NCBI GenBank assembly: GCA_047495785.1
Contig: JBLDXI010000017.1
Coordinates: 1,798,001 to 1,862,000, forward strand
DNA from: Lepidodermella squamata
Taxonomy: Eukaryota > Animalia > Gastrotricha
Reading direction: 5' to 3'
Length of the DNA: 64,000 nt
In this document: piece by piece, positions 47,590 through 63,480 of the stretch
Layout of the letters: the number at the start of each line of letters is the position of its first letter
How positions within the stretch are numbered: the stretch's first letter is position 1
Program-made: the position numbers and the translations under genes
The notes under the pieces: model-generated
What the model was told of the DNA's origin: nothing
Databases searched by the model: none
What the model saw: the letters and a program-made list of their open reading frames with translations, nothing else

Positions 47590-48189
47590 ATGACGATGAA
47601 TTTTGCGTTTGTTATTGTCAACGTGATATTCGTACTCAGCGATGCAGCTATGACAGGACCTTACGCCGGGTTCTTCCCTCATAATTCTCCCATTGCTAAA
47701 ATTTTCCTGTCGAAAACTTCTAATCAGCTTCAGCCCATCGCCGATCAGTCTTCGAGCAATCCTAAGGACGATAATGACGGATATTACGATGACTATGAGT
47801 CGTATTCCTATGAGTATGATGACGATTTCGGCCCAGAAGGTGTTTTCGGTCAATTAGCGCGTGATATCGAGAAAGCTAACACTCCAATCGCTAGGACTAC
47901 AACGATTGACGCCGGGGATTACTACGACAGCTATGAATCGGAGGAATACGATGGTGACTACGACGAGGCAGATCAGGATTCGGAGGATTATGACGCCAAA
48001 GTCGACTCTGAGCTACCTCAAGTTACCAAGTAAATGCACTAGAGATATACCGAATTTTTAATCCTAATTTTTCTCCGATTTTTTAGTCATAAAATTCAGA
48101 TGGAAGACAATTACGGGCTACGGCAGAATTGGGCGACTGCTTCGCATCCGAAAATTTTGCTGATTCATGGATCGAATAACGATGTTTGA
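47590..48189 (+). CDS. Secreted acidic Asp/Tyr-rich protein
   Basis: Signal-like MNFAFVIVNVIFVLSDA; two YYDxYES-containing acidic blocks; exons 47590-48029 and 48087-48189 join in frame. Confidence 0.75.
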
Positions 48190-49363
48190 TTATCGTGAAG
48201 TAACATAAGCAAAAGGTGATGGATTGCTTTGTGAATAAAAGAGATCGGTGTTTCAGATTGATAAGAGGCCTTGATAATGAATTGGCTCAATTTATTGGTT
48301 ATTTCTGAGAATTCTAGCTAATCGAATTCCAATCCTAGTTGCTGTTAGCTGTACATTACTTCAGAGGTCTGAAGATCCGAGAATCATTGCTGCCGGGAAA
48401 TTTTGGGGTCAGCGGGAAATTTTCTTTAATTTATTTCGAAAGCAATTTTAGACCATTTCCACAACTAAAAAAAGAAAAAACGTCAGCTGAAGGTGGCCAA
48501 TAACTGGTATAATTTGATGATACTTGGTGATTCCAACGGGAATTTCCGGTATTCTTTAAAATTTATCATCAAAATCACTGAACAAAAATTGATAGCCGTT
48601 GTTGCAGAGATATATTGCCTAATTTTACCTCAATTCCTATCACATTTCGAAAATTCCCGTGAACTCGCGAATTGCAAAATCGATGAATACAATTCTTGAG
48701 AAAAAATCCGTCCCGATTTTTAAAAGTTTTCAAATTTTAATTGTTCAAAGCTTCGAACTGTTTTTCGCCGAGATCAACTCGGCCGTTTTATTACGCGTCA
48801 CCTCTAATCTGACTTTATAGCCAATACTAGACTGATACTTGACCTTTTTTCAACCAGCCGGCACAAGTTGTTTCCTACACTGGTTGGTCACATGATTTTT
48901 TCATGGACGGTTCACCGTAGGTTACCGGAATGGAGGATAATCTTCCCGAGTTCTAGCGCTCATGCATTTGACCGCATGTTAGGATTATAAGGGTTAATAC
49001 CTTCGACTTTTTTGTATTCCATAGCTTGTAGGAAAAGCCAAATTAGGATTATAGCGCAGTTTAAATGTCCAGCGAAATTCAGTCTCTCGAGAAAACTATA
49101 TTCCGACGCGTATGAGGCTAATATGGTTGCTAATCTCTACACGTAAGAGATTTTCAGATACATTTTATTATCAGCCGTAATTGAGGCAAAAGGTCAAGCC
49201 ATGCGGCGAGTGGGAGCCGCACGATAGGCGTTGGTCAAACACCCTGAGGCGTCACAGCTATTCATCCAGTTGCGCGTGATGCCTCTACTTCGAGTGCTGA
49301 GATGAGACGATTTAATAAGTCATCCAAACAGGAGCAAGAAAAATCCTATAAAATCTTTACGCC

Positions 49364-49376
49364 AGGTCATTGACCT
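49364..49376. promoter_or_regulatory. Perfect IR1 nuclear-receptor response element AGGTCA-T-TGACCT
   Basis: Read directly; it lies between TATAAAA (49347) and the ATG at 49431. Function is inferred only. Confidence 0.45.
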
Positions 49377-49430
49377 AGGTATGATGCAGGTATAAGTCAC
49401 GCTCTTTTTTCCTATCTAGACGGATTAATT

Positions 49431-49667
49431 ATGGTTAAACTTCGTGCCATTGTAATTTTCATGCTACTCATCGACGCAATTTCAACGACCGAACCTCGAA
49501 AATCGGACCGTTCATTGTTGGAAATTCGATCGACCGACAATTTCAACCTGCGAGTTGCGCCGTACATCTACCAGTCTCGAGAACTCAAGAGGAGTATACA
49601 AAACCGCGGGCGAGCTAAAAAACGTGATAACACCAGATCAAGCCATCAATATCTGCCTAGAATTTAG
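49431..49667 (+). CDS. Small secreted basic protein / possible prepropeptide
   Basis: Signal-like MVKLRAIVIFMLLIDAIST, dibasic sites KR and KKR, AATAAA at about 49721. Confidence 0.6.
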   Translation: MVKLRAIVIFMLLIDAISTTEPRKSDRSLLEIRSTDNFNLRVAPYIYQSRELKRSIQNRGRAKKRDNTRSSHQYLPRI

Positions 49668-50481
49668 CAGAGGTGTGAAGATTTTTTGTAGAAAAAACTG
49701 TCGTATTCTAGTGATATAATAATAAAAGTCACATTCTTGTCAAGTTATTCATCTTCAACAACCGTACTATTTTTTGTGTGTCAGATAAAGGTGTGTAATG
49801 GAGTTGTTAAATACTGGTCAGTGAAACGCCATATTATCGTGTTTTTTGCATTTTAATGATAGCTATTAACGTTCGAACTCATCGTGAACCTGAGCGTGCG
49901 CACGCTTCATCATGTGGTCACTTTAGCGACGAGCGAAAAAAAAATAAGAATTAATGCAATAAAATGATGGCTGGCACGAGCAACGTATTATAAATATTAT
50001 ACTTTTCGATATATAGGGGGCTGTATAATAACAACTGCCCAGCCTAAAATATCGTGCGCGCGAAATTGATGAGAGTGAGCAACAGAAAAAAATCTGCGAG
50101 GATACGTGTATTTGTCAAGTAGCCGCTACAATGGCTCGTGTCGTGTGTTAAAATAATAACTGTCAACGTCACTCACGCTCTGGCCGTTACCTCTGCGCTC
50201 GTTGGCTACTCGACGCCTTGACCATCAAGCGCGGCGAGATGATGGTGGTAATGCGCAGAAAAAAAACTACCACCCTAAAAAAAACAACAACAGTTTATGG
50301 ACTCACTTGAGATTTTATGAAGCGACGAGATGAAGGCTTGTGATTTCGATGCTCAACTCAACGGCAAGCTATTATAATTACCTGCGTGAAAAAATGTTAC
50401 GTCACGTTTTGATCACCATACTTAATTGCTGTAGTAATTAATTTTGGCATAATCTTAATTGTTAATTAGGAATATTTTATA

Positions 50482-52714
50482 ATGCGATTGCCTGGAGTTG
50501 AGTTATTTTTATTATTTTCGATCTTCGCCCTCGTCTCATGTGGAACAACAAGACGATCTCAGAGGCGAAGTACTACAACCAGGGCGAGGCCAGTGATGTT
50601 TTTCGCGAATGATGGCGTTCAGCCAGCCCAGAGCAATCCGGCTGTTGAGGAACCGAATAATTCCGGAAATAATGCTGCGGCTTACAACGCCAACTTTTTG
50701 GGTAACCTCAATCAGTTGGTACAGCCGGACGCGGGCCAGGGAGCACCTCAGGCTGCTCAGGGCGCCCAGGGTGATCAACAACAGGTCGCTGGGCAGGAGC
50801 AACAACAACTCCCTAGTAACGTCATCATTCTCCTCGACGAACTCGGCCGTCCAGTTGGAGCTGCACCAGCTCAGTTAATTTAAAAAAAAAATTTAAATTT
50901 AAATTAATTAAATTTTATTAATAGCCAAAATCGGCAAATTGGTATCGCAATTCCTGGCGCAGATCAGTATCAGCAGGAATTGTTGGCTAAGCTTCAGGAT
51001 GCTATGCGTGCTCAACAGGCGGAGGAGCAGCGCCAGCAGCAGATTATTTTACGCCAACAACAGCAACAACAGCAAACACAACGTCAACAGCAGAGGCAAC
51101 AGCCACAAAGCGGCCCTTATTCGAACCCGCAAATGCCGCCATATCCACAGCCAACTGAACCCTATGTTGCACCCGATGCCTCCATGGCCTTGCCTTACCA
51201 GCTCGCGCAACGTAATCCGCCTCGTCGCCAAGCTCAAACTTTCCAGTAATTTTTAATTATTTAAATTACATTTTAAAATTTTAAAATTAACGTTTCATCT
51301 TTCATCTTTCAGTTTTTCTCAAATTAATTTGTTCAGGTTTTTTCACGATTTTTAATGTTGACCTAATTTTTTGTAGAAGCCCGTATCAATTAACTCCAGG
51401 CAATTCGGGCGGCTTGAGAATCATCGCAATCAACGAGCGTGGAGTTCCAACTGGCATCATTCAGCCCGACGAAACGTTAATTTACCTTGATCGAAATGCT
51501 CTCGACGATCCTTCAAATGTTATTTTAAACAATAGAATTCAATACTTGGAGAATCAAGGCCCGTCACAGCAACAGCAACAACAGCAGCGACTACCGGCTG
51601 ACGCTCCTCTGGCTTTCGCTAATTACCCAGGGGCCGTTTTGCCGCAAAGCAGTACAACGACTGAGCCGCCAATTCCGAACATTCGCGATAATTTGCCGCT
51701 GGCTCTCGGCAGCCTTGTCAACACGGTTGTAGCGGCGAATCGCGACAACAGCGCTGCTCGCCGTAATGACCAAAGGCTTGATGATCAACGAACAAGTGTT
51801 AGAGACAGGGTAAATTTTAATTCCTATATTTTTCTTTTCAAATCATCTAGGGTTTACGAAATATTTTATGGGAATATTCATAACCCGCTATTTAGCCTGA
51901 ATTTTTATTGTTAATTAAATTTTTAATGTATTTTAAACCTCGGAAAAATGAGCTATGAACTGGGAATTTTCGTCTTTTAAATTTTAAATTTTAAACTTTT
52001 ACGATTTCAAAATATGCGATCTCTCAATAATTGCCTGATGGTATAATAAAAATACTAAAAAATGTTCAGTGAGAATGCACAAAATCCGCGGAAATTCGGT
52101 CTAACCAGGTAAAATACCGAAAATCACCAAATTGTGTCTCATCGGGGTTTTTCGGGAATTTTTCGAAAAATCAAGTTTTCTATGTGGTGCAGTTGCAAAA
52201 ACTGATGGGAAATTTTAAGAAAAATTCCACCATAAAATGAAAATGAAAAAATTATTCGGGCAAATTAAAAGGGTACACTTCAACGTTATTCCTTTATTTT
52301 TATTCTTGTAATAGCTACCGGCGTTGAGTGATGTGTGGCAGGACACCCCTAGGGAAAACCAAGCTCCTTATCAATACATTCGCCCAGCTGCGAATCTGCG
52401 TCAAGGAACCACCATGATCGACGATGTCCCAATAGTAACCCCTCCTCCTTACCGCATCGACGACAGCGGCCGGTACCAGCCTTTCCAACAGCAGCGGCAA
52501 CAGCAGCAACCGAACGGCGGCGACCCATACGCTGATAACGCAGCGGTTCCAGCGCGGAACCGGTTCTACGACAGCCAGTTCAACAACCAGCAGCAAATGC
52601 CGGCGAGGAATAGAGGCCAGCAGCCGATGGCGCCGTACGACGGGCAGCCTGATGACGACGGAATGGCAACGCCACAGCCGCAGTTTCAACGCCAGCAATA
52701 TCGGCCACGGCCCC

Positions 52715-52745
<31 letters not shown>

Positions 52746-53311
52746 GTACCCGATGCAGCAGCAGCAACAACAGCAGCAACAAAACGGTTTCGGTTTCGGT
52801 GGGAATAATCCTTTCTTGAACTCGAATTCTCTTCTCGATCGGGCGAATGGTTTGTTGGGTCCCAACTCTGGGCAGCAGCAAATGCGGCCGCAGCAACAAG
52901 GTCAGCAGCAACGGTTTGGAGGCGCCCCTCAAGGCTCTCCTCAGGGTGCTAATTTTGGCCAGGGAGGAGAGTCGAACGGCGGCACTGACTCGCTATTTGG
53001 CGGTGATTCAGGTATGAGCTCATCAAAAAGGGGAATTTTCCTATAATTCCTAATTTTTTCTAGGCATTGGCGGCTTTTTGACTAATCGGGTCGGTCCAAT
53101 TATCAATCGCATGTTCGGAAGTTCGATTGGGTCCCAACAGCAGGCTCCGCAACAACAACAACAGCAACAACAACAGCAACAACAACAGCAGCAACAACAG
53201 CAAGGACCACAACAGCAGCAACAACAATCGATGAACGGTAACAATAACAACAGGCCGCCTGTGAATACTGCATTCGCTCGAAACAGCCTACGTCGGCCTA
53301 TCTTCGATTGA
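50482..53311 (+). CDS. Large secreted Gln/Asn/Pro/Gly-rich protein with polyQ tracts
   Basis: Signal MRLPGVELFLLFSIFALVSC; exons approx 50482-50873, 50925-51245, 51377-51809, 52315-53011, 53064-53311 join in frame; CAA/CAG runs at about 52714-52781 and 53150-53227. Confidence 0.85.
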
Positions 53312-54283
53312 AAGAAAAAATCAACACATTCTATAGCTTTTTTCTACTCATCGTCGTAGCTTTGATTAAACTCCAACTTTGTACGAAAACTTGTGTTTTT
53401 CACGCGAAAAAAAACGTCCAGCTTAAAAAAATAACGCAAGAGCGAAAGGCCAACTATCATAATTGCATGGGTGGTAATGCTGTCCGAAACTCATCTTTTT
53501 TTATGCACCTTGATGAGAGTAGTCACAGGCGTGCCAAAAATTGCTGCATTTCATATTTCTTCTGCTGTAAATAGCAATTTTGTTATAAAATGTTAATGCC
53601 GGTTTTGTTGTTCACGTGTGATTTTATTTAAATATATCTTTTTTTAATATTTTTGTTGAATGTGTGCGTGTACGTACCCCACAAGGAGCGCTTTTGTGGT
53701 TAAAGAAAAATAAAAATCTTAAAATGATGAGCTTATGCGGTTTTTTTAATTGATAGCCGTATACGTTATTACGGGCTCGTGGTTTAAATGCGTTAATAAT
53801 TTACCTCGATTATTGTTTTACAGCGCTCGAGATGATGAGGATAGAACACAAGTATATGTCCCGCGTTTGTAAGTCACGAAAATTACACAGCAACCGTAAA
53901 CAAGTTTGCGTAATAACAAATGCGAAATAATAGCCCTTACTAAACGAGTATTGCTCTAATTTTTAGCCTTAACATATAAAATTTTTCCCAGGGTCTACTA
54001 TCCCATTCGAGGTAACGCGCACTGCGCCATTTTTTTGGTTTCGCGAAAATGTGTCAAATAAGTATCCGCGCGTGACCTCTATAAAAGTGCGCGCGTGAGT
54101 CTCAAGATGGCCGAAATTATAATCAGATGCGCATCGGTAAAAACAATCTCATCAGCGCGGTGTAATCTCGTTTTAATTATTTTCAAAATAAACAGGTATT
54201 GCAGGACGCGGACTAGTTTTGTACAAATTATTTCAATATTTTGTTGCACATTTTTATTATAGTCTCGTTTTCTTTTTTTCAAA

Positions 54284-55174
54284 ATGATTGGCTGCCGTTG
54301 TATCGCCTTAGCTATGCTTGTTTCGGCTTGTCAAGCCCAGTTCTTCTACCCAACGATATCTAACAATAATTTTTTCAAAAATTTCTGGCCAAATTACGGC
54401 GGATCGAACAAAATTGGCAATAGCCTGCAGCAACAGTCTAATTTCCAGCAGACGACAACCGTGACACCTGGGCTACCTTTGGCTTTCCAGGTTCAAGATC
54501 AGGCAAAACTCGCAAATTTCGTTGTCTTGCCTGCCGTTAGCAAACAGCAGGACGTTAATTCGTTTTTCCCGGCCTACAAACCTCAGACGTGAGTTACATT
54601 TTGTTCCTAGAAATGTCGCAGTGATATCTACCCCCTTTGTTTTTCAGTTTTACTTCTCTATTAGGCGGTAACGAGTTCTTCCAACCTCAGCAACAGCAAA
54701 CCAGGTGAGAGGATTAATTTTAAATTTTAAATCGTTAAAATGCTTTAATTTTTAAAGAGAGAAACCAAAAACGTCGTGCAAATAAAATCAAAACATTGCG
54801 CAGCATGATTTAAAACGTTGCGCTAGTGCGTAATATGCGTCGCGCTTTGTTTAATTTGCGCGCACCTTTCTGTTTTGCGCGACGTTTTGATATTATTTGC
54901 GCGGCATTCGAATTATTTTGCGCGACGCATGTCTAAGGCCATTTTTAAATGTTCCAACGCTATATTTTTGTCTTCCATCGCCAGATATTCGGCTCCAATG
55001 TTGTTTCAAAGCTTTGCTCAACTTCCGAATACTTGGAACCAAAATACGCAGAATAGATTGCCCAATGGACCTGTTGCGTTTGCCCCGCAAGCGAACTTCT
55101 TCGGCAACAACCAGCCGGTAAATTTCCGAGGCTACAATGGTTTCAACGGAAACGGGCTGCCATTCCAAGTCTAG
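54284..55174 (+). CDS. Secreted Gln/Asn/Phe-rich low-complexity protein
   Basis: Signal MIGCRCIALAMLVSACQA|QFF; exons 54284-54588, 54648-54703, 54985-55174 in frame; TATAAAAG at about 54080. Confidence 0.8.
54765..54930. repeat. Imperfect inverted-repeat / MITE-like insert in intron 2 of the 54284 gene
   Basis: aaaacgtcgtgcaaataaaatcaaaacattgcgca pairs with ttgcgcgacgttttgatattatttgcgcg. Confidence 0.55.
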
Positions 55175-55472
55175 GACCTGAACAAATGTATAGCAATGTA
55201 TTGAAGAATCTCATTCCTCAAGCACCATCTATAACTTTTGGTTTTTCCGCAATTTTAGCGAGAAAATCCGCATTTTTTATAATCCAATTTATCGAGCAAA
55301 TTTTGATTTTGAATCAAGTAAAATTTATTGACAAGCAAAACTGTTAATATTATTTGCACGGTTGTAAAAAAACACAAGATTTGATTTTTGTATAATATAG
55401 CTTGGAGTTGAGCCTGAGGTAAAGTTATTATGATGATTGAGATTTTGCATCGAAATCAATCGCATATTGCCA

Positions 55473-56837
55473 TCACCGTTTTTGCCGCTGAAAAACCGTC
55501 CTCAACGGTGGAAACCATTCTCCCATAGGGACGTTGTAGTTCATATTTTGCCGCTCTTGATTAGGGTAAGTCTGGAAGTTTCGCTCCCTAAATTAAAAAA
55601 TTTAAATTCAAAATTTCAAAAATTTCAAAGTAATTTAAATTAATTTAAAAATTTAGATTTAATTTTTAAAAATTAAGATTGATCTAGGAAACGCTATTCA
55701 ACTCACATTGATTGCTTTTGTGGCATCGACCCAATTGACGATGGATAATTCTGGAAATAATTTTCAAATGTGCCCTTGATTTCATGGATAGAAGACGCAG
55801 ATGGCGGTGCGAAAGGCAGCTGAGGCTGCGGCTGAATTCGGCCATTATTTGGCGATGATTCACCGATACTCGACTTCAACATCGGTATATTAAAGTTATA
55901 GCCGCCATTGTCTTGCTTGAAAGATTTCAAGTATTGAGCGAGGAACGATTCGCTAGCTGACTCGATCATTTTATCGACCTCAGGCATAGTTTGAAGCCAA
56001 GCCGGCGATGCGAAAGGGGCTTTGGTTGTAAATTCCCTCGCTTTTTGGTACGAATTATCAGCTTTCATCCTAGGATTGGCGATTTGAGGGTAGCGTCTTG
56101 GCTCGTTTTCCAGGGATATTTTCTGCGGCCCAACTTCGGGAGGATCGATAGCGATGAACAGCGGTTGGGTTGTTGTAGTAAATTCTGCAGCCTTTTCGGC
56201 CGTTTCCAACGGTAGCTGATAGCTGAAAATTGGCGAGCTTGTCGTGGCAGCCGAATGTCGGATTAGATTAGGGTTGACAAAAGCTGGCAGAACAAAGTTA
56301 TTCTCCGAAGGGAAATGCTGATAACCAGGTCTAAAGTTGGCCATCCTCGGGCTAGAAAAATTATAAAAAATAAAAAATTCCGCCTTAAAAATTAAATTAC
56401 GCGAAATTATTATTCGGTTTCCAGTATTTCTGAGGCTGTTGAGCCTGGGGAAATTCTAGGCCTGGCTGCGGAAAGTTGAGACCGAAAATCGGCCGGTCGC
56501 TCTGGCGAAATCGATAATTAGGAACTTTTCGCTGGGAACTTCGTCTAGGTGGAGGTACAAATCGAGGCCGATCGATTATGTCCTCGTCAGCTGCGTTTCT
56601 AACATCACTGCTTCCGGTTTCGAATTTCGACCACGGTTTCGGTTGATTGAGCGCATCGTTCAATCCGCCTTGATAGGTTGACCACGATTTCAACTTCATA
56701 AAATCTGGAAAAATCTCGGACAGCGGAATCGCCTTGGTGGACCTTGGTTTATGAGAACGATACTGTTCATGTTGGGAGGTTCGAACACTATTCAGTAACA
56801 CGGCTGCTAACACTGGAATGATTTTCTTAAAATTCAT
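55473..56837 (-). CDS. Secreted Pro/Gln/Phe/Asn-rich protein
   Basis: Signal MNFKKIIPVLAAVLLNSVRT; exons approx 56837-56401, 56351-55707, 55587-55473 (ERNFQTYPNQ..FQRQKR*) in frame. Confidence 0.78.
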
Positions 56838-59231
56838 TGCTCTAAAAAATATTCTTGAAATTTGCGCTGGAAGATTGTTCATAAAGTAACGCTTGTTATC
56901 TTGAAATAAACACCGCACTGGCCATGGCATAACAACAAAATTTAAGTTAATGACTCGAGCCGGCGGGCAGAATTATCTTCCGTCTCATATGTTTGGGTAT
57001 GAAATGTGTCTGCTTTTTTTGCTAAAAGATGAGCGCATAACTTATCTAATATACAGCGTATATTGCGTTTATATCATTGTTGTTTTGCGGAATTGTGAAA
57101 ACACAGGTAACAGAAAATTCAACAAATGAGCGGAATAATTAGTAGCCGGATTTTTAATACTTTTATTCATCGTACGCAATGGAAAAACAAACGATAAATG
57201 TTACGCCGTCACGCAAAAATCGACTCGCAATCACATGAAACACGTAAAATTTTATCGCATCATTATTTGGGACGCTAAAACAAAAAGGTGTTAATACAGG
57301 TACTAATATTGTGGGTTTGTTGTGTTATATTGACATTGAGGTGGTGAATATTTTATGAGTATATAATTCCAGATTATGATGATGGACTTGATTATGAGGA
57401 TGCTATAACGCATTTCAACCCGCAATCACGACAACATTCCGCTTGATTCAGCATCGGCTCTTGTCGATGGAAAAATTGACCATTTACCATATACCATATA
57501 TTTATTTATTTATTATTGTACAGAAGTGATTGATTCAAGGTGTTTAATGAAAGATGAAAAAATAAACCAAAAAGTATTTTATCACTTTACACCACAGAAG
57601 GCCTGTGAAATCTACCGATTGGGAATCGGCTCGGTATCATTTCGGATTGGGATCGGTATTTTTTGGTATTTTTACCAGGTATTTTGCCTTTTTCAACTGA
57701 TTTTTCCATTCTGTGTAACCAGCTACGTAGCTGATGATATGTCTCATGCAAAATACCCACAGGCCAGAAGATCGGATATTGCCTCACATTTAATACTTTT
57801 TCTCTTCCTTCGGTTGGGTCACTTTTGCGCTGCGATATCAAAGCAATATCAATCAGGGTTCCTAAAGAAAAATTGGCCTCAAGTTTTACTAGCGAAAATG
57901 TTCATTTCAGAAAATGCGCGCTCAAGTTTTAATAATCGGCCTCGTTTCATTTGTTATTAATTTTCTTACAGCATACGCTCCATCGATATTCATAAAATGG
58001 GTATTTCGAGGCCAAAAAACTTGTAATTAATAATTAAAATCATAGTTGATAGTTGCAGAATCAGGCCAGGGTCTAGACCCCATCAACCTGAAGCTGTACG
58101 ACTTTGAGGTTTTCCGTCTTTTAGGTAGAATTGGAGCATCCTAGTGACCAGTGGTGGAAAACTAAAAAAGTCAAAATCAACAAGATCTTGGCAAAAGGTA
58201 AAAAGTTGTTATTTGCCCTAGTAAATACAATTCTTGCGAGATTCGCTGGAAGATTTTGGAAATTCACCTTATCGATTCCTGACGATCTCTGAGTTTGATG
58301 TGATCAGTGTGACCTCTCCAGATTCCTGAACCAATTGGTAACTGGGCTTGCCAATGATTCTTTACAAGAGATAATACCTATGGACTTGGGACTTCGAATT
58401 CGAGCGGTATTACTGCTCTTAGACTGCTCTTCAACCATTCGTGAAAAATGAGAACCAAATTTTGAGGCGGTTTCCCCTAAACTGCTGGGTGAATGTCATG
58501 TTTTCGGTTCCAAACTAATTGTGAATGAAATATCTGTCGATTAAGGCTATGGCTCATGGTCGTCGTACGCACAGTTATTGCTGTAGACCCCCTGGCAAAT
58601 ATGTATATGCAACACCCTGTAGCTCTGTAAGGTAACTCTGACTATCAGTCGTCGCGATAATTCTCATTATAATCTCGCTCGCTTACCTATCTCGTGAGTT
58701 TCATCTAATATTTGAATAAAACTTGAGTAGGACGCACGGCTTTGTTCGCTCATATGCTATCTCATCATTTTCACAGAAATCTTGCCGAGCGGAAAATTGA
58801 TGCGCGAAAAACACGTGCGACGTTATATTTAATGAGAAAAAAATTGAAAGCGCTTTGAAAATTTTATTAAACTGTGTGCTAAATGCCAAGCAGTTGGTAA
58901 ATGCTGCTGGCGTGAATGGCGAACATTAGGCAGATGAAAACGGCTAAAACGGCCTGGGAAGAATTGACAGCGCTCACGAATAATGTCGAGAGACAACTAA
59001 AAACAGTAGACTTTTAGATTACAAAAAAACATGTTTTCGCATTAGATGGGTTATTAAACACTGCCCGCTACTACTACTACTACGACTATTATCTTCTGCT
59101 AAGACTGCGCGAGCGCGCGCGATAATAAATGATGCGCAAATAAGATTCTCTCACTTTGCGCGCACGAGTTGTGGATAAAATAGCTCATATAATATAATCT
59201 CGCTGTTTTTGGCGCACTACCTAATTGCTCG

Positions 59232-60417
59232 ATGTTGATTCATCGATTGTTGATACTTCACGGCGCCTTGATCGGCGTCTTCGCGCAACCAATGCCACCT
59301 ATTGACGACGCTAACATCTTCAGCCCTAGCATCCTACAGGTAAAAAAAAATCATAAATATCCTGAATAAAATAAAATAAAATTATTTAGGGCTTAACATC
59401 TTTCGGTAAAACGTTCTTCGGTCAAAATAAGGCCGAAATTCGGCGAAATGCAAAACGCGTTTTAGCCAACGGTTTTCCTTCTATGGTGGACAATTCGAGA
59501 CGGGCAATCGATAATTCGGCTGATAATCAGATCAGGAATAACAACCTCCCGTTATCATACCAACCACCGCCCAATCCTCCGGTTCAACCCACCAATAATC
59601 ATATCCCATCACCCCCAGTGGTGAATAAGCCTCCGGAACCGCCGAATGAAAATTCCTTGCAATTCCCAGCTTCAATATGGCAACAACCGGGCGAGCCGGG
59701 TTCCGACGGCCCGCTGCCGGTTCTCCAGGCGCCACTGCCGAATTTCGGTCTACCGCAAGTTGCGCCGCACTTTCCGCCGAGTAAGCAGATAATAGTCAGC
59801 AATCAGCCTCCTCAACTTCCAGTCACACATGGCGCGAGCAATCTTCATAGAAGGACGGGAGATCTCGTACCTCAATTACCGACTACGTTAATGGGTCAAA
59901 ATGATCAAATACCCATGATTGAACCTCAACGGTAATAATAATTTGATAATTCTCACGCTTCAATTTTATTCCTTATATTATTTCAGGTCAAGTGGAACGG
60001 CTCTAAAATCTAGCAAACAAAGACGCTATCCAAATAATGCTGGGTAAATTCCAAATTTAAAAATTAAAAATTTAGTGAATTTTAATTAAATTTCAAATTT
60101 TTATTTACTGCAGTTACGATGTGAATTCTGTGCGTTACACGAACGGTAACGCGTGGCAACAACCGAGTCGTTACATTCACCATCAAACCGCTCCAGTAAC
60201 ACGGAATTTCGGTAATTTTAACCAACCCAGTACCCTATTTCTGGTACCGCCGCAGCAGCAATCGAATTATCGCATGAACCAGCCTCGAAATACGCGACGT
60301 AACAACAACAGGCGATTGAATAATTTCAACAGCCCGAATAATCAACGGTTTTATCAAAGGAATAACATGCCGCTACGTGTAAATCGGCAAAGAATGGCGA
60401 ATTATTGGCAGAATTAG
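59232..60417 (+). CDS. Secreted Pro-rich protein with Asn/Arg/Gln-rich C-terminus
   Basis: Signal MLIHRLLILHGALIGVFA|QP; exons approx 59232-59339, 59390-59931, 59987-60043, 60114-60417 in frame. Confidence 0.8.
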
Positions 60418-60619
60418 TTTAACATATTTACATAATTCCCCGCTATCTCATCAATTAGACAACACTTTGCTTGCTCATCTTCATCAATTTTTGTTGTCAA
60501 TTTTGTTTTTATTACATGCGCACCTGGTTGCGCTATTATGTCTCAAAGCATGTTGTTTTTACCTCTCGGGCTTGAAAAGAAATAAAAATGTTCAAATTTT
60601 TGGAAAAAATACCACGACA

Positions 60620-60943
60620 ATGACAATAACCGCGGTGATTTTTTGCCTCGTTATTTTGAAATCTACTGAAGCGTGTATAACTCCCTCGTCGTTCTGGTCC
60701 GCTGGACACGTTCCCGATGACGACGGAATCCGGCATTGCCCATGCAGACAGCAAACCCAAGTAGAGGCGGCGTGTAAATTCTACGACGAAAATCGAATTT
60801 CGACGTGGGTTTGCGAAGCAGAACGCCGAATTCAACGCTGCCGTTGCCACAACACCACGTGGGCAGATTTCAAGAAGTACTGCTTCTTCGACGGGACATT
60901 TGACACGTTCATATGCGATCCTTTCGAAATTTTAGACACTTGA
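60620..60943 (+). CDS. Small secreted cysteine-rich protein with two tandem 4-Cys modules
   Basis: Signal MTITAVIFCLVILKSTEA; nine Cys in the mature part; AATAAA immediately after the stop. Confidence 0.75.
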   Translation: MTITAVIFCLVILKSTEACITPSSFWSAGHVPDDDGIRHCPCRQQTQVEAACKFYDENRISTWVCEAERRIQRCRCHNTTWADFKKYCFFDGTFDTFICDPFEILDT

Positions 60944-61354
60944 CATATTTTAATAAAAAATTTCGATTAAATTGATAATTTTGACATCAATTATTTTTTT
61001 TAGCTTGTAAATCTACCCCATTCTTGTTTTATTGTTATGGCGCTGCGGTTTTGTTCCGGAAAAAAATGGAACAAAAAAAGAAACAATGAAGAGATTTGCG
61101 CGCTTTAGCGTTAATTGCGCAGTGCGCAGAGAAAACTGAAAAATTATATGCTGTTATTAGGAATTCTACCCGCTAGAAGAGCGCACATGGCGCCAGTATA
61201 GTACCAGCGGAGCTTGCTCGCTGAGAAATAATTTTACCTGCCGACTTTTAATGGCTAAAAATAACATTATTTTTCCGTAAAATAACTTACATTCGATACA
61301 CTTTTCAGTGCGTCGTGATGATGGAATGAAATTGTCTCGTCATCCTTTTGCGAT

Positions 61355-63480
61355 ATGATTTTGCTGTTGTTAATCGTGCTGACTTCTTCATCAATTTCGA
61401 ACGCTGCTGGCGCTAACAATAGGAGGAAAGTTAACTTGCTCAATGGAGATCGTGACAAGTTTTTCTCGATGATTTTCGGCGGAATCAGCTCGCTTATCGC
61501 TGCGGGTAACAACAAAACACTCGAGTCTCTATCGAATTCGACAAATAATGGGAACAAAAACGGCAATAATTCAAACTTCGAACGAACTAGAACTTGGTCT
61601 TCTGCTGATAGCGATTCTCCGCTTTACGCCCACAGCCAGGAAAGATTTGAGCAGACCTTCCAGCGGGGCAACCGATTTGAGCCTATGGTATTCAATAACC
61701 CAGGCTTTCGGGAAGTTACAACTTCGAAAGGAATTTTAGTGGATAATCGAAACAATATTCGGAATGTCATTGTACCAATACCTGAAGTTGTGCGATTCGA
61801 AACAACTACATCAACATGGCGTACTCGGCGTCTTAGGCCAGTAAGAATATCAACTGCTGGAACCACCACTACTACTACAGGACTCCCAATCGCTTTTCTG
61901 AACTTACCATCTCAAGGTCAAACTTCGAATTCACAAGATGTGGTGAGGCCTCTTGTTGTGTACGACTTTTCTGGCAGGGACAGTCCGCCTTTAGCCACCC
62001 TACCTGGTTACCAGGCTGATAAGCAAAAGCCATTGCCTATGGCTGTCGAATTCGAACCAGCTATGGATACATCGAACTTTGCCGTTGTAACAAGAGAGGA
62101 TGCTACAACGCCGCGAATCGATCCACCTAAATTAATTCAGAATCGGGAAGGCCCGCCACGGGCCGAAAAACAACCACAAGGTTATAACCAGAATTTCGAG
62201 AGGAATCGATTTATCAACTCGAATTTGATGAATGTTTTCTTTATGCCGCCGATGTTCAATCCGGCGGAATTTGTTAATTTTAACCCATTTGGATCTCAGC
62301 AGGCAATGATGCAACCTCAGCCGATTCTGGCTGGGAGTGCGACTTTTTACCCGGACGGGCCAGTTTCGATTTACCACTGGAGTCCTAATGGCCAGATTTA
62401 CAGCGCCGGTTACGTGCTGGAACCTTTAAACGAGCCATTCACCTCAACTACAACGTATCGGCCTAACAACAATTGGAAACATCCGGTTATTTCGAAACCG
62501 GATTTTGATAGTGGTGAGTCATCAGATTACAGTTACTATGATAACAGCGGCGAAATTATAACAACAACGACTACAACGGTCAAAACAACGACTACGACGA
62601 CGAAGCGGAAAAGGCGGCGAAAAACGACGCCAGTGTCTGTGATGACTCATCGCAGGGTTCGGCCAGGTTTCAGGCCACAGCCGGCTGTGGTCCGGAAAGC
62701 GGTATTAGACTCATCCGCTGCCGAGATCGACCCTGATTTCGATCGAATTCTAGAGAAATACCCAAGTAACTATAAGATGACCGTTAACAAGTGAAAATTG
62801 GGGTTTGGCGAAATTTTTGACAACGTGAGATTTTGATGCCGCTTTCAAGATCAATGAATGAGGAGTCGAACGATATAAAAAATAGGGTTCAAAGTTTACG
62901 GGTGAAAATTGGCAATGTGCGCGCTAAAAAAATGCTGTTTATTATTGCATCAATTAGTGATTCATCGCGCAATAAATTCTCATGTTACTTTATTGTGCGC
63001 GGTCGAGATTTTATTAGGTAATCTGAGGTGAGGAATCTTGGTAGAATTAAAAAAAATCGTTAGAATCAAGCTAGTGATTCCACGTAAACCTGAATCGATA
63101 AGCCTTTTGGGATCTCCCGACTATTTAGGTGGATGGGAGCCTCCTATAGAGGTCTGAATTTTAAAAATTCAAAATCCTCAAGAAAAATTGACTTGAGAAT
63201 CGTCCCTCTTCAAGTCCTTTTGCCATTTGCTGGAAAATACAGAAAATACGCCAAACCCCATTTGTCACTTGTTAACGGTCAAATAACTCCGATTTAATTT
63301 TGATTTTTTTTAAATATAGGTATTCAAGAGGTGCTGGAAGCTTCACCATCTACAATCAACATGAGTAAATCGGTTAAAAGCCGGATTAGTAACCAGGCCG
63401 CTCCGTCGGTAATTAAAATCAGCCGGAAGCGGAAAAACTTTACGGAGGATGTCGAGGAGATAGAATTTCAGCTATCTTAA
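61355..63480 (+). CDS. Secreted Thr/Asn/Pro-rich (mucin-like) protein, two exons
   Basis: Signal MILLLLIVLTSSSISNA. Exon 1 61355-62765 (A|gtaact) joins in phase 1 to exon 2 63320-63480 (SIQEVLEASP..IEFQLS*). The ORF-track stop at 62794 lies inside an intronic TIR. Confidence 0.82.
62778..63281. mobile_element. MITE with 33-bp TIRs, same family as 8293-9604
   Basis: TGACCGTTAACAAGTGAAAATTGGGGTTTGGCG (62778-62810) pairs with CGCCAAACCCCATTTGTCACTTGTTAACGGTCA (63249-63281). Subterminal 62825-62885 aligns with 8330-8390. Confidence 0.85.

Follow-up and report, generated by a model that had tools for sequence, protein, structure and literature searches.

Predicted genes of the locus

In Lepidodermella squamata, a gastrotrich, the genome contains a cluster of predicted genes for secreted, low-complexity proteins, which is described here. 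The analyzed stretch of DNA (the window) covers 64,000 nt of contig JBLDXI010000017.1 (C17:1,798,001–1,862,000), with a GC content of 38–45%, and positions refer to the whole window unless a contig name is given. An earlier note, made from the letters alone, had described 47590–63480 as eight consecutive orphan genes for secreted proteins that might build an extracellular material. Models built by hand from the letters at 47.4–64 kb place eight predicted genes (G1–G8) where the note had them, between 47590 and 62794; its upper limit of 63480 closes a separate 39-codon open reading frame (ORF) that has no signal segment, is not in frame with G8 and is probably a small gene or exon of its own. 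All of G1–G8 lie on the + strand except G5, which is on the − strand. Just beyond the window is a ninth gene, G9, so that the observation in the earlier note is confirmed and extended (Table 1).

Every modelled junction follows the GT/AG rule and each model stays in frame through to its stop codon. The introns measure 49–505 bp and are typically short, at about 50–57 bp. The genes are separated by gaps of 202–2394 bp that are nearly free of repeats; a look at the long gaps for transposons showed one dispersed repeat of about 120 bp and no more. The start codon of G5 is ambiguous: upstream of the ATG at its signal-like start there are two more in frame (56930 and 56882).

The models are also supported by a dicodon (hexamer) coding score compared across all six frames, for which 86 long ORFs located elsewhere in the same genome were the training set. 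The modelled frame ranked first of six in 18 of 18 scored exons, for which the chance probability is about 1e-14; among these exons are G2, a small gene, and the last exons proposed for G1 and G5. The 479-codon ORF of G8 has by itself a chance probability near 1e-12. G2 is the weakest gene of the set, its 78-codon ORF having a chance probability of about 0.01 on length alone.

Table 1. Predicted genes, exons and neighbouring features (top frame: modelled frame ranks first of six by coding score)
Feature	Position	Strand	Description
G1 exon 1	47590..48029	+	147-codon ORF; donor GTAAAT at 48030; coding score +0.36, top frame
G1 putative exon 2	48087..48197	+	36 codons through TGA stop; AG acceptor, frame kept; top frame
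G2	49431..49667	+	Single exon, 78 codons; TATAAA at −84; coding score +0.07, top frame
G3 exon 1	50482..50873	+	Signal-like start; top frame; G3 has five exons (50482–53311), 696 codons
G3 exon 2	50925..51245	+	Preceded by 51-bp GT..AG intron, frame kept; top frame
G3 exon 3	51377..51809	+	Least repetitive part of G3; frame kept, top frame; single copy in genome
G3 exon 4	52315..53011	+	PolyQ runs; CAA/CAG repeats; frame kept, top frame
G3 exon 5	53064..53311	+	PolyQ run of 18, then stop; CAA/CAG repeats; top frame
G4 exon 1	54284..54588	+	Signal-like start; top frame; single copy; G4 has three exons, 183 codons
G4 exon 2	54648..54704	+	57-nt phase 2-2 micro-exon, model only; GT/AG, frame kept
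G4 exon 3	54985..55174	+	GT/AG, frame kept; top frame
G5 exon 1	56401..56837	−	Signal-like start from ATG at 56837; GT/AG, frame kept; top frame
G5 exon 2	55707..56351	−	P/S/Q/N/F-rich, least repetitive member; single copy; top frame
G5 putative exon 3	55473..55587	−	38 codons and stop; donor GTGAGT, AG acceptor, frame kept; top frame
G6 exon 1	59232..59339	+	Predicted signal peptide exon; G6 has four exons (59232–60417), 336 codons
G6 exon 2	59390..59931	+	GT/AG, frame kept; top frame; single copy
G6 exon 3	59987..60043	+	57-nt phase 2-2 micro-exon, model only
G6 exon 4	60114..60417	+	GT/AG, frame kept; top frame
G7	60620..60943	+	Single exon, 107 codons; 9 Cys past signal-like segment; top frame; single copy
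G8	61355..62794	+	Single exon, 479 codons; short Thr runs, basic patches; top frame; single copy
Coding-like ORF	63361..63480	+	39 codons; coding score +0.30, top frame; basic KRK patch, no signal segment
G9	C17:1862041-1862838	+	265 codons, signal-like start, single copy; 41 bp past window end, 1.2 kb after G8
Downstream secreted-protein genes	L005:1200-9100, L007:260-7500, L006:200-4600		Segments within the 28 kb past the window; L005 starts at window end

Signal segments, composition and predicted disorder

All nine N-termini satisfy a home-made signal-peptide rule that asks for an uncharged hydrophobic core of 8–13 residues followed by small residues at −3 and −1, in agreement with the earlier reading of a signal-like start on each of the eight genes; the same rule accepts 27% of background ORFs. 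Beyond the signal segment nothing in G1–G9 indicates a membrane anchor, with no 19-residue window exceeding a Kyte–Doolittle mean of 1.0. A Pfam scan of ten ORFs or exons, taken to E = 1, gave no domain below E = 0.01 and none at the gathering score, and no Pfam domain was found in G9. The absence of a recognizable domain or membrane anchor, as originally described, thus stands.

The compositions also agree with the earlier list: the set contains an Asp/Tyr polyanion, an Arg-rich protein, four Q/N/P/aromatic chains, a nine-Cys module and a protein with Thr runs. G1 (pI 4.1) is a polyanion rich in Asp, Tyr, Glu and Ser after its signal-like start (D 13%, Y 8%), and 11 of its 14 tyrosines have at least three Asp or Glu and no Lys or Arg within five residues, the kind of setting looked for around candidate sites of tyrosine sulfation. 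The small G2 is Arg-rich and basic (pI 11.2, R 15%). G3 is rich in Gln and Pro (Q 21%, P 10%), with polyQ runs of up to 18 residues, G4 in Gln, Asn and Phe (Q 14%, N 13%, F 12%) and G6 in Pro, Asn and Gln (P 14%, N 13%, Q 9%; pI 11); G5 is basic and P/N/Q-rich. Seven proteins (G2–G6, G8 and G9) have a pI of 9–11 versus 4.1 for G1, and aromatic residues make up 6–17%. G7 carries nine cysteines after the signal segment and forms a small Cys module, the other members being almost Cys-free. In G8 there are six Thr/Ser runs of 4–6 residues and no tandem repeat at the DNA level; the note had called this protein mucin-like, and the runs are there, but it lacks the long Pro/Thr/Ser tandem-repeat domain of a mucin and has ‘mucin-like patches’ at most. 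G3 also shuns lysine to an extreme degree, its mature sequence of about 673 residues having 51 Arg and a single Lys, and Arg greatly exceeds Lys in G2, G6, G8 and G9 as well.

The residues Q, N, P, G and S together account for 31–53% of eight of the nine proteins, G7 being the exception (19%). A charge–hydropathy (Uversky) plot has six of the nine proteins on its disordered side and three at the boundary. With G7 excepted, the predicted proteins fit the class of intrinsically disordered, prion-like low-complexity chains. Single-sequence AlphaFold2 models, made without an alignment, had confidence (pLDDT) values of 46 for G7 and 41 for G5 exon 2, too low for a fold search. For G1–G9 we infer disorder and, by heuristic only, secretion.

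Copy number and relatives

The 121.2-Mb, 151-contig assembly was searched with the cluster members, exon by exon for the multi-exon genes. Every member except G2 was tested, and each of these eight matches only itself and is therefore single copy. An all-against-all BLASTP comparison of the exon peptides found no similarity within G1–G8, as expected from the earlier description of these genes as not obviously paralogous; the sole similarity is a 33-residue motif shared by G8 and G9 (39% identity, E = 2e-4). Single copy and the lack of any other BLASTP similarity together indicate that the locus is not a tandem family.

Protein searches beyond Pfam covered G5 (exon 2), G7 and G8. No relative of G8 was found by phmmer among 1.84 billion representatives, and none in a word-indexed protein search (which did not return even G8 itself), in JGI metagenome contigs or in the PDB. 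The searches with G7, the PDB included, gave no homologue, and those with G5 exon 2 gave none apart from the PDB match described below. Metagenome scans and language-model searches yielded nothing at a usable level. A language-model search placed G8 weakly near unnamed arthropod proteins and, at 0.76, near enamelin; the scores span 0.76–0.87 and make this a lead only. For G5 exon 2 the best PDB match was to a retroviral capsid-like domain (E = 0.027, 17.5 bits), all hits being variants of one protein; with no Pfam Gag match and no confident fold, we take this match as chance.

The Lepidodermella squamata genome (2024) is the first for Gastrotricha, and a single adult transcriptome, SRR1273732, served in its annotation (PMC11660948). 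No TTAGGC telomere arrays of the nematode type were found in the assembly; an SL1 RNA search gave no hit anywhere and says little. Second gene copies such as a bdelloid rotifer would be expected to have are also absent for the members tested. Orphan status is therefore partly expected, as there is no second genome of the phylum and fast-evolving low-complexity proteins look orphan. The claim that these are orphan genes holds for G5, G7 and G8, for which no relatives were found, but is less striking than it first appeared.

These results bear on the possibility that the genes are young or arose de novo from repeat-prone DNA, some perhaps being non-functional. Such an origin would account for the missing relatives of G5, G7 and G8, for single copy, for an effective number of codons (ENC) near 61, for the CAA/CAG microsatellite-like tracts in G3 and for a G2 of just 78 codons. 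It accords poorly with ORFs of 479 and 696 codons, with four in-frame introns in G3 and with a correct-frame hexamer signal in each scored exon, and the missing relatives are expected in any case in a phylum with no second genome. On balance we regard a recent origin as improbable.

A neighbourhood of predicted secreted-protein genes

Signal-like genes are unusually dense here. The 38 kb from G1 onward contain 13 listed signal-like coding ORFs versus 3 expected, about five times denser than a control consisting of the same crude scan of 200 kb, which gave 16 (Poisson P about 2e-5). About 17% of ordinary Caenorhabditis elegans genes carry a signal peptide (PMC9629831), and with this figure the probability of nine signal-like genes in a row is near 1e-7.

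The 28 kb of contig beyond the window end were also examined. Downstream of G9 lie a trypsin gene, CAP-domain genes (at least three) whose products have Thr-rich stalks, a gene for a signal-bearing PQQ-like β-propeller and an astacin gene. The astacin has an intact HExxH motif, and repeated small Cys modules there open with ‘PACG...P..NG’. The low-complexity run is thus the front of a secreted-protein neighbourhood of at least 38 kb. A second run of eight ORFs with signal-like starts occupies 19 kb of the same contig 0.8 Mb away (C17:1,030,878–1,050,396). The proteins of that run have ordinary composition, and several of the ORFs resemble paralogs, sharing a ‘REGF.QDC’ motif.

This setting raises the alternative that G1–G9 are simply neighbours in a fast-evolving region of secreted genes, each acting alone beside proteases and CAP proteins; possible roles would be in the gut lumen or in mucus, in defence as a peptide, or in a surface coat. 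The run indeed gives way to genes of very different kinds (trypsin, CAP, propeller and astacin), its members have neither a shared promoter motif nor a codon bias, and another signal-like run exists 0.8 Mb away on the contig. The low-complexity character, however, is particular to G1–G9 and absent from that second run, and independent roles would leave both the complementary charge and the common Arg/aromatic/Q-N composition to coincidence. We consider independent action somewhat unlikely.

Upstream nuclear receptors and promoter regions

Three nuclear-receptor genes lie 1008 bp upstream of the cluster, and the earlier note had raised the idea of a linked regulator–effector module, taken here as direct control of the cluster by these receptors. 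The cluster shows no enrichment of nuclear-receptor half-sites (RGKTCA; 1.61 per kb versus 1.59–2.09 elsewhere), six of the nine 500-bp upstream regions contain none, and there is no shared promoter k-mer. The half-site comparison is a weak test, since the binding preferences of these receptors may differ from RGKTCA. With the 1008-bp proximity as the only point in its favour, direct control is highly improbable and this part of the earlier proposal is left without support.

GCGC-type words were considered as a shared promoter motif and rejected, as they are found all over the window.

Intron phases and possible hidden kinship

Nine of the 12 modelled introns are in phase 2, versus a rough genome background of 28 of 91 (about 31%) from short introns that bridge ORFs (P about 0.002). 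The phase-2 donors have the form xx|GTAA or xx|GTGA, so that retention of the intron brings in a stop codon in frame at once; the G1 protein, for example, would end at 48033 with its 57-bp intron retained. G4 and G6 each carry, in the models, a penultimate micro-exon of 57 nt with phase 2-2 boundaries. The phase-2 excess could reflect hidden common ancestry, selection for a stop on retention or a bias of modelling.

Hidden ancestry would mean that tandem duplication of a single ancestor produced the genes and that their sequences have since diverged past recognition, so that only gene structure betrays their kinship, in a manner likened to the vertebrate SCPP cluster of enamel, milk and saliva proteins. 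Besides the phase count and the shared micro-exon, this possibility draws on the G8–G9 motif and on the single orientation of seven of the eight window genes and of G9. It must be set against the lack of any BLASTP similarity beyond that motif, the three members that are intronless and the nature of the phase count itself, which is post hoc and taken from hand-built models in which stop-overlapping donors are the easiest to spot, a possible source of phase-2 bias. A cryptic paralog array appears unlikely, and it would be compatible with the shared-material interpretation given below.

Comparison with known matrices and glues

Of the apical matrices built from proteins of this type, the pharyngeal cuticle of nematodes is documented best. 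Its secretome in C. elegans shows a strong enrichment of disordered proteins that are low-complexity and phase-separating (PMC9629831). As predicted for the cluster described here, the proteins have signal peptides, consist almost entirely of low-complexity, prion-like sequence with a Q/N/P/aromatic composition, and are taxon-restricted; they have been proposed to form the apical matrix by phase separation (PMC9629831). The nematode proteins differ in belonging to multi-member paralog families with oscillating pharyngeal expression, whereas G1–G9 are single-copy and mutually unrelated. Searches that included nematode proteomes gave no match of G5, G7 or G8 to the nematode APPG and IDPA-C families.

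Two temporary-adhesion proteins of a flatworm, a member of the sister phylum, offer a second comparison. Mlig-ap1 and Mlig-ap2 are giant and Cys-rich, with long repeats and with vWD, EGF, TSP-1, lectin and TIL domains, and their cohesion and release are driven by charge interactions (PMC6410801). They resemble what is predicted for the present set in being secreted and lineage-restricted, with no database homology and with strongly basic regions (PMC6410801). The genes described here encode products of only 78–696 residues that are almost Cys-free except for G7, and the Pfam scan found no vWD, EGF, TSP-1 or lectin domain in them.

The vertebrate SCPP cluster encodes enamel matrix proteins, caseins and salivary proteins beside the acidic SIBLING genes. 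Paralogy among its members is demonstrable, and they have introns in phase 0, a SPARC-like ancestry and Ser-x-Glu motifs for phosphorylation. Both loci are physical clusters of genes for secreted and disordered (at the gastrotrich locus by prediction), P/Q-rich and acidic proteins seemingly unrelated in sequence. In the gastrotrich locus the introns are mostly phase 2 and BLASTP finds no kinship in sequence beyond the G8–G9 motif, with no more than a hint of common ancestry; the likeness to SCPP genes is an analogy only.

In sandcastle-worm cement and other complex-coacervate glues, a polyanionic protein is co-secreted with several polybasic proteins. The polyanion of the worm cement is phosphoserine-rich and the polycations are rich in Lys, Gly and 3,4-dihydroxyphenylalanine (DOPA). 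The charge pattern of G1 versus G2–G6, G8 and G9 is similar at the level of composition, with the difference that the anion here is Asp/Tyr-rich and the cations are Arg-rich.

A proposed shared external material

The interpretation that we prefer is that G1–G9 are nine unrelated, single-copy, lineage-restricted genes for secreted disordered proteins that contribute to a shared external material. We assign this whole reading a probability of roughly 0.4. The part that the analysis shows, namely the genes, their frames, composition and copy number, the lack of relatives and the secreted neighbourhood, is by itself very probably correct. The earlier interpretation is partly supported: its secreted, disordered, orphan and clustered elements hold at the level of prediction, and the idea of one material or gland is a plausible conjecture.

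Each protein would begin with a signal peptide that looks cleavable, and the low-complexity sequence after it would be disordered for the most part. The products would form part of the matrix of an external material that an epithelium or gland produces, candidates being the cuticle or scales, the pharyngeal lining, the egg shell and a glue. Assembly might proceed through many weak contacts that Arg, aromatic and Q/N residues make with one another, G1, which is acidic, serving as counter-ion; in phase-separating proteins generally, an Arg, aromatic and Q/N make-up favours condensation. A common role is suggested by the tight spacing, the + orientation of eight of the nine genes, the pairing of one polyanion with seven polycations and the Arg/aromatic/Q-N make-up. 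We infer the joint function and the assembly mechanism, and the support for a common role is circumstantial.

Several observations weigh against a shared material. The signal-peptide rule is weak alone, given that more than a quarter of background ORFs pass it, and low AlphaFold2 confidence without an alignment is weak evidence of disorder. Known material loci are usually paralog arrays, and G1–G9 are not detectably related. Codon usage is unbiased, which speaks against expression at bulk, silk-like levels; the ENC values of 52–61 equal those of control genes, namely the TRIM-like and nuclear-receptor ORFs close by. Among 6- to 8-mers, none common to the nine promoters survives multiple testing. 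The exact sequences of G1, G2, G7 and G8 were not found in a collection of 15 billion proteins.

A more specific form of the shared-material reading, which we think quite unlikely, is that the locus is a toolkit for a gastrotrich material, such as the scales of the cuticle, the egg shell or the glue of the duo-glands, in which G1, as a sulfotyrosine-type Asp/Tyr polyanion, condenses the Arg/aromatic chains of G2–G6, G8 and G9 into a solid. If true, it would represent an animal exoskeletal or adhesive matrix that is independent of collagen and chitin and is built from genes without relatives outside the phylum.

We found no papers on the proteins of the gastrotrich cuticle, scales, egg shell or adhesive, and the locus supplies an emerging model species with a small, well-defined set of candidate matrix genes. 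Clusters of lineage-specific genes for secreted disordered proteins are a known theme; what is unusual here is clustering without detectable paralogy, among single-copy and mutually unrelated genes. The locus bears on the origin of secreted disordered proteins and on whether gene order and structure can keep a kinship that has been lost from sequence. If expression of the genes proves unrelated, the locus would be one more fast-evolving secretome region.

Repeats within the locus

Intron 2 of G4 is unusually long (280 bp), and within it 54873–54930 consists of 2.6 copies of a GCGC-rich unit of 21–24 bp. TGCGC/GCGCA-like words are frequent throughout the window. The 2.4-kb gap between G5 and G6 contains a single repeat, a dispersed element of about 120 bp at 58495–58625 with three other copies of 79–80% identity on contigs C24, C9 and C7.

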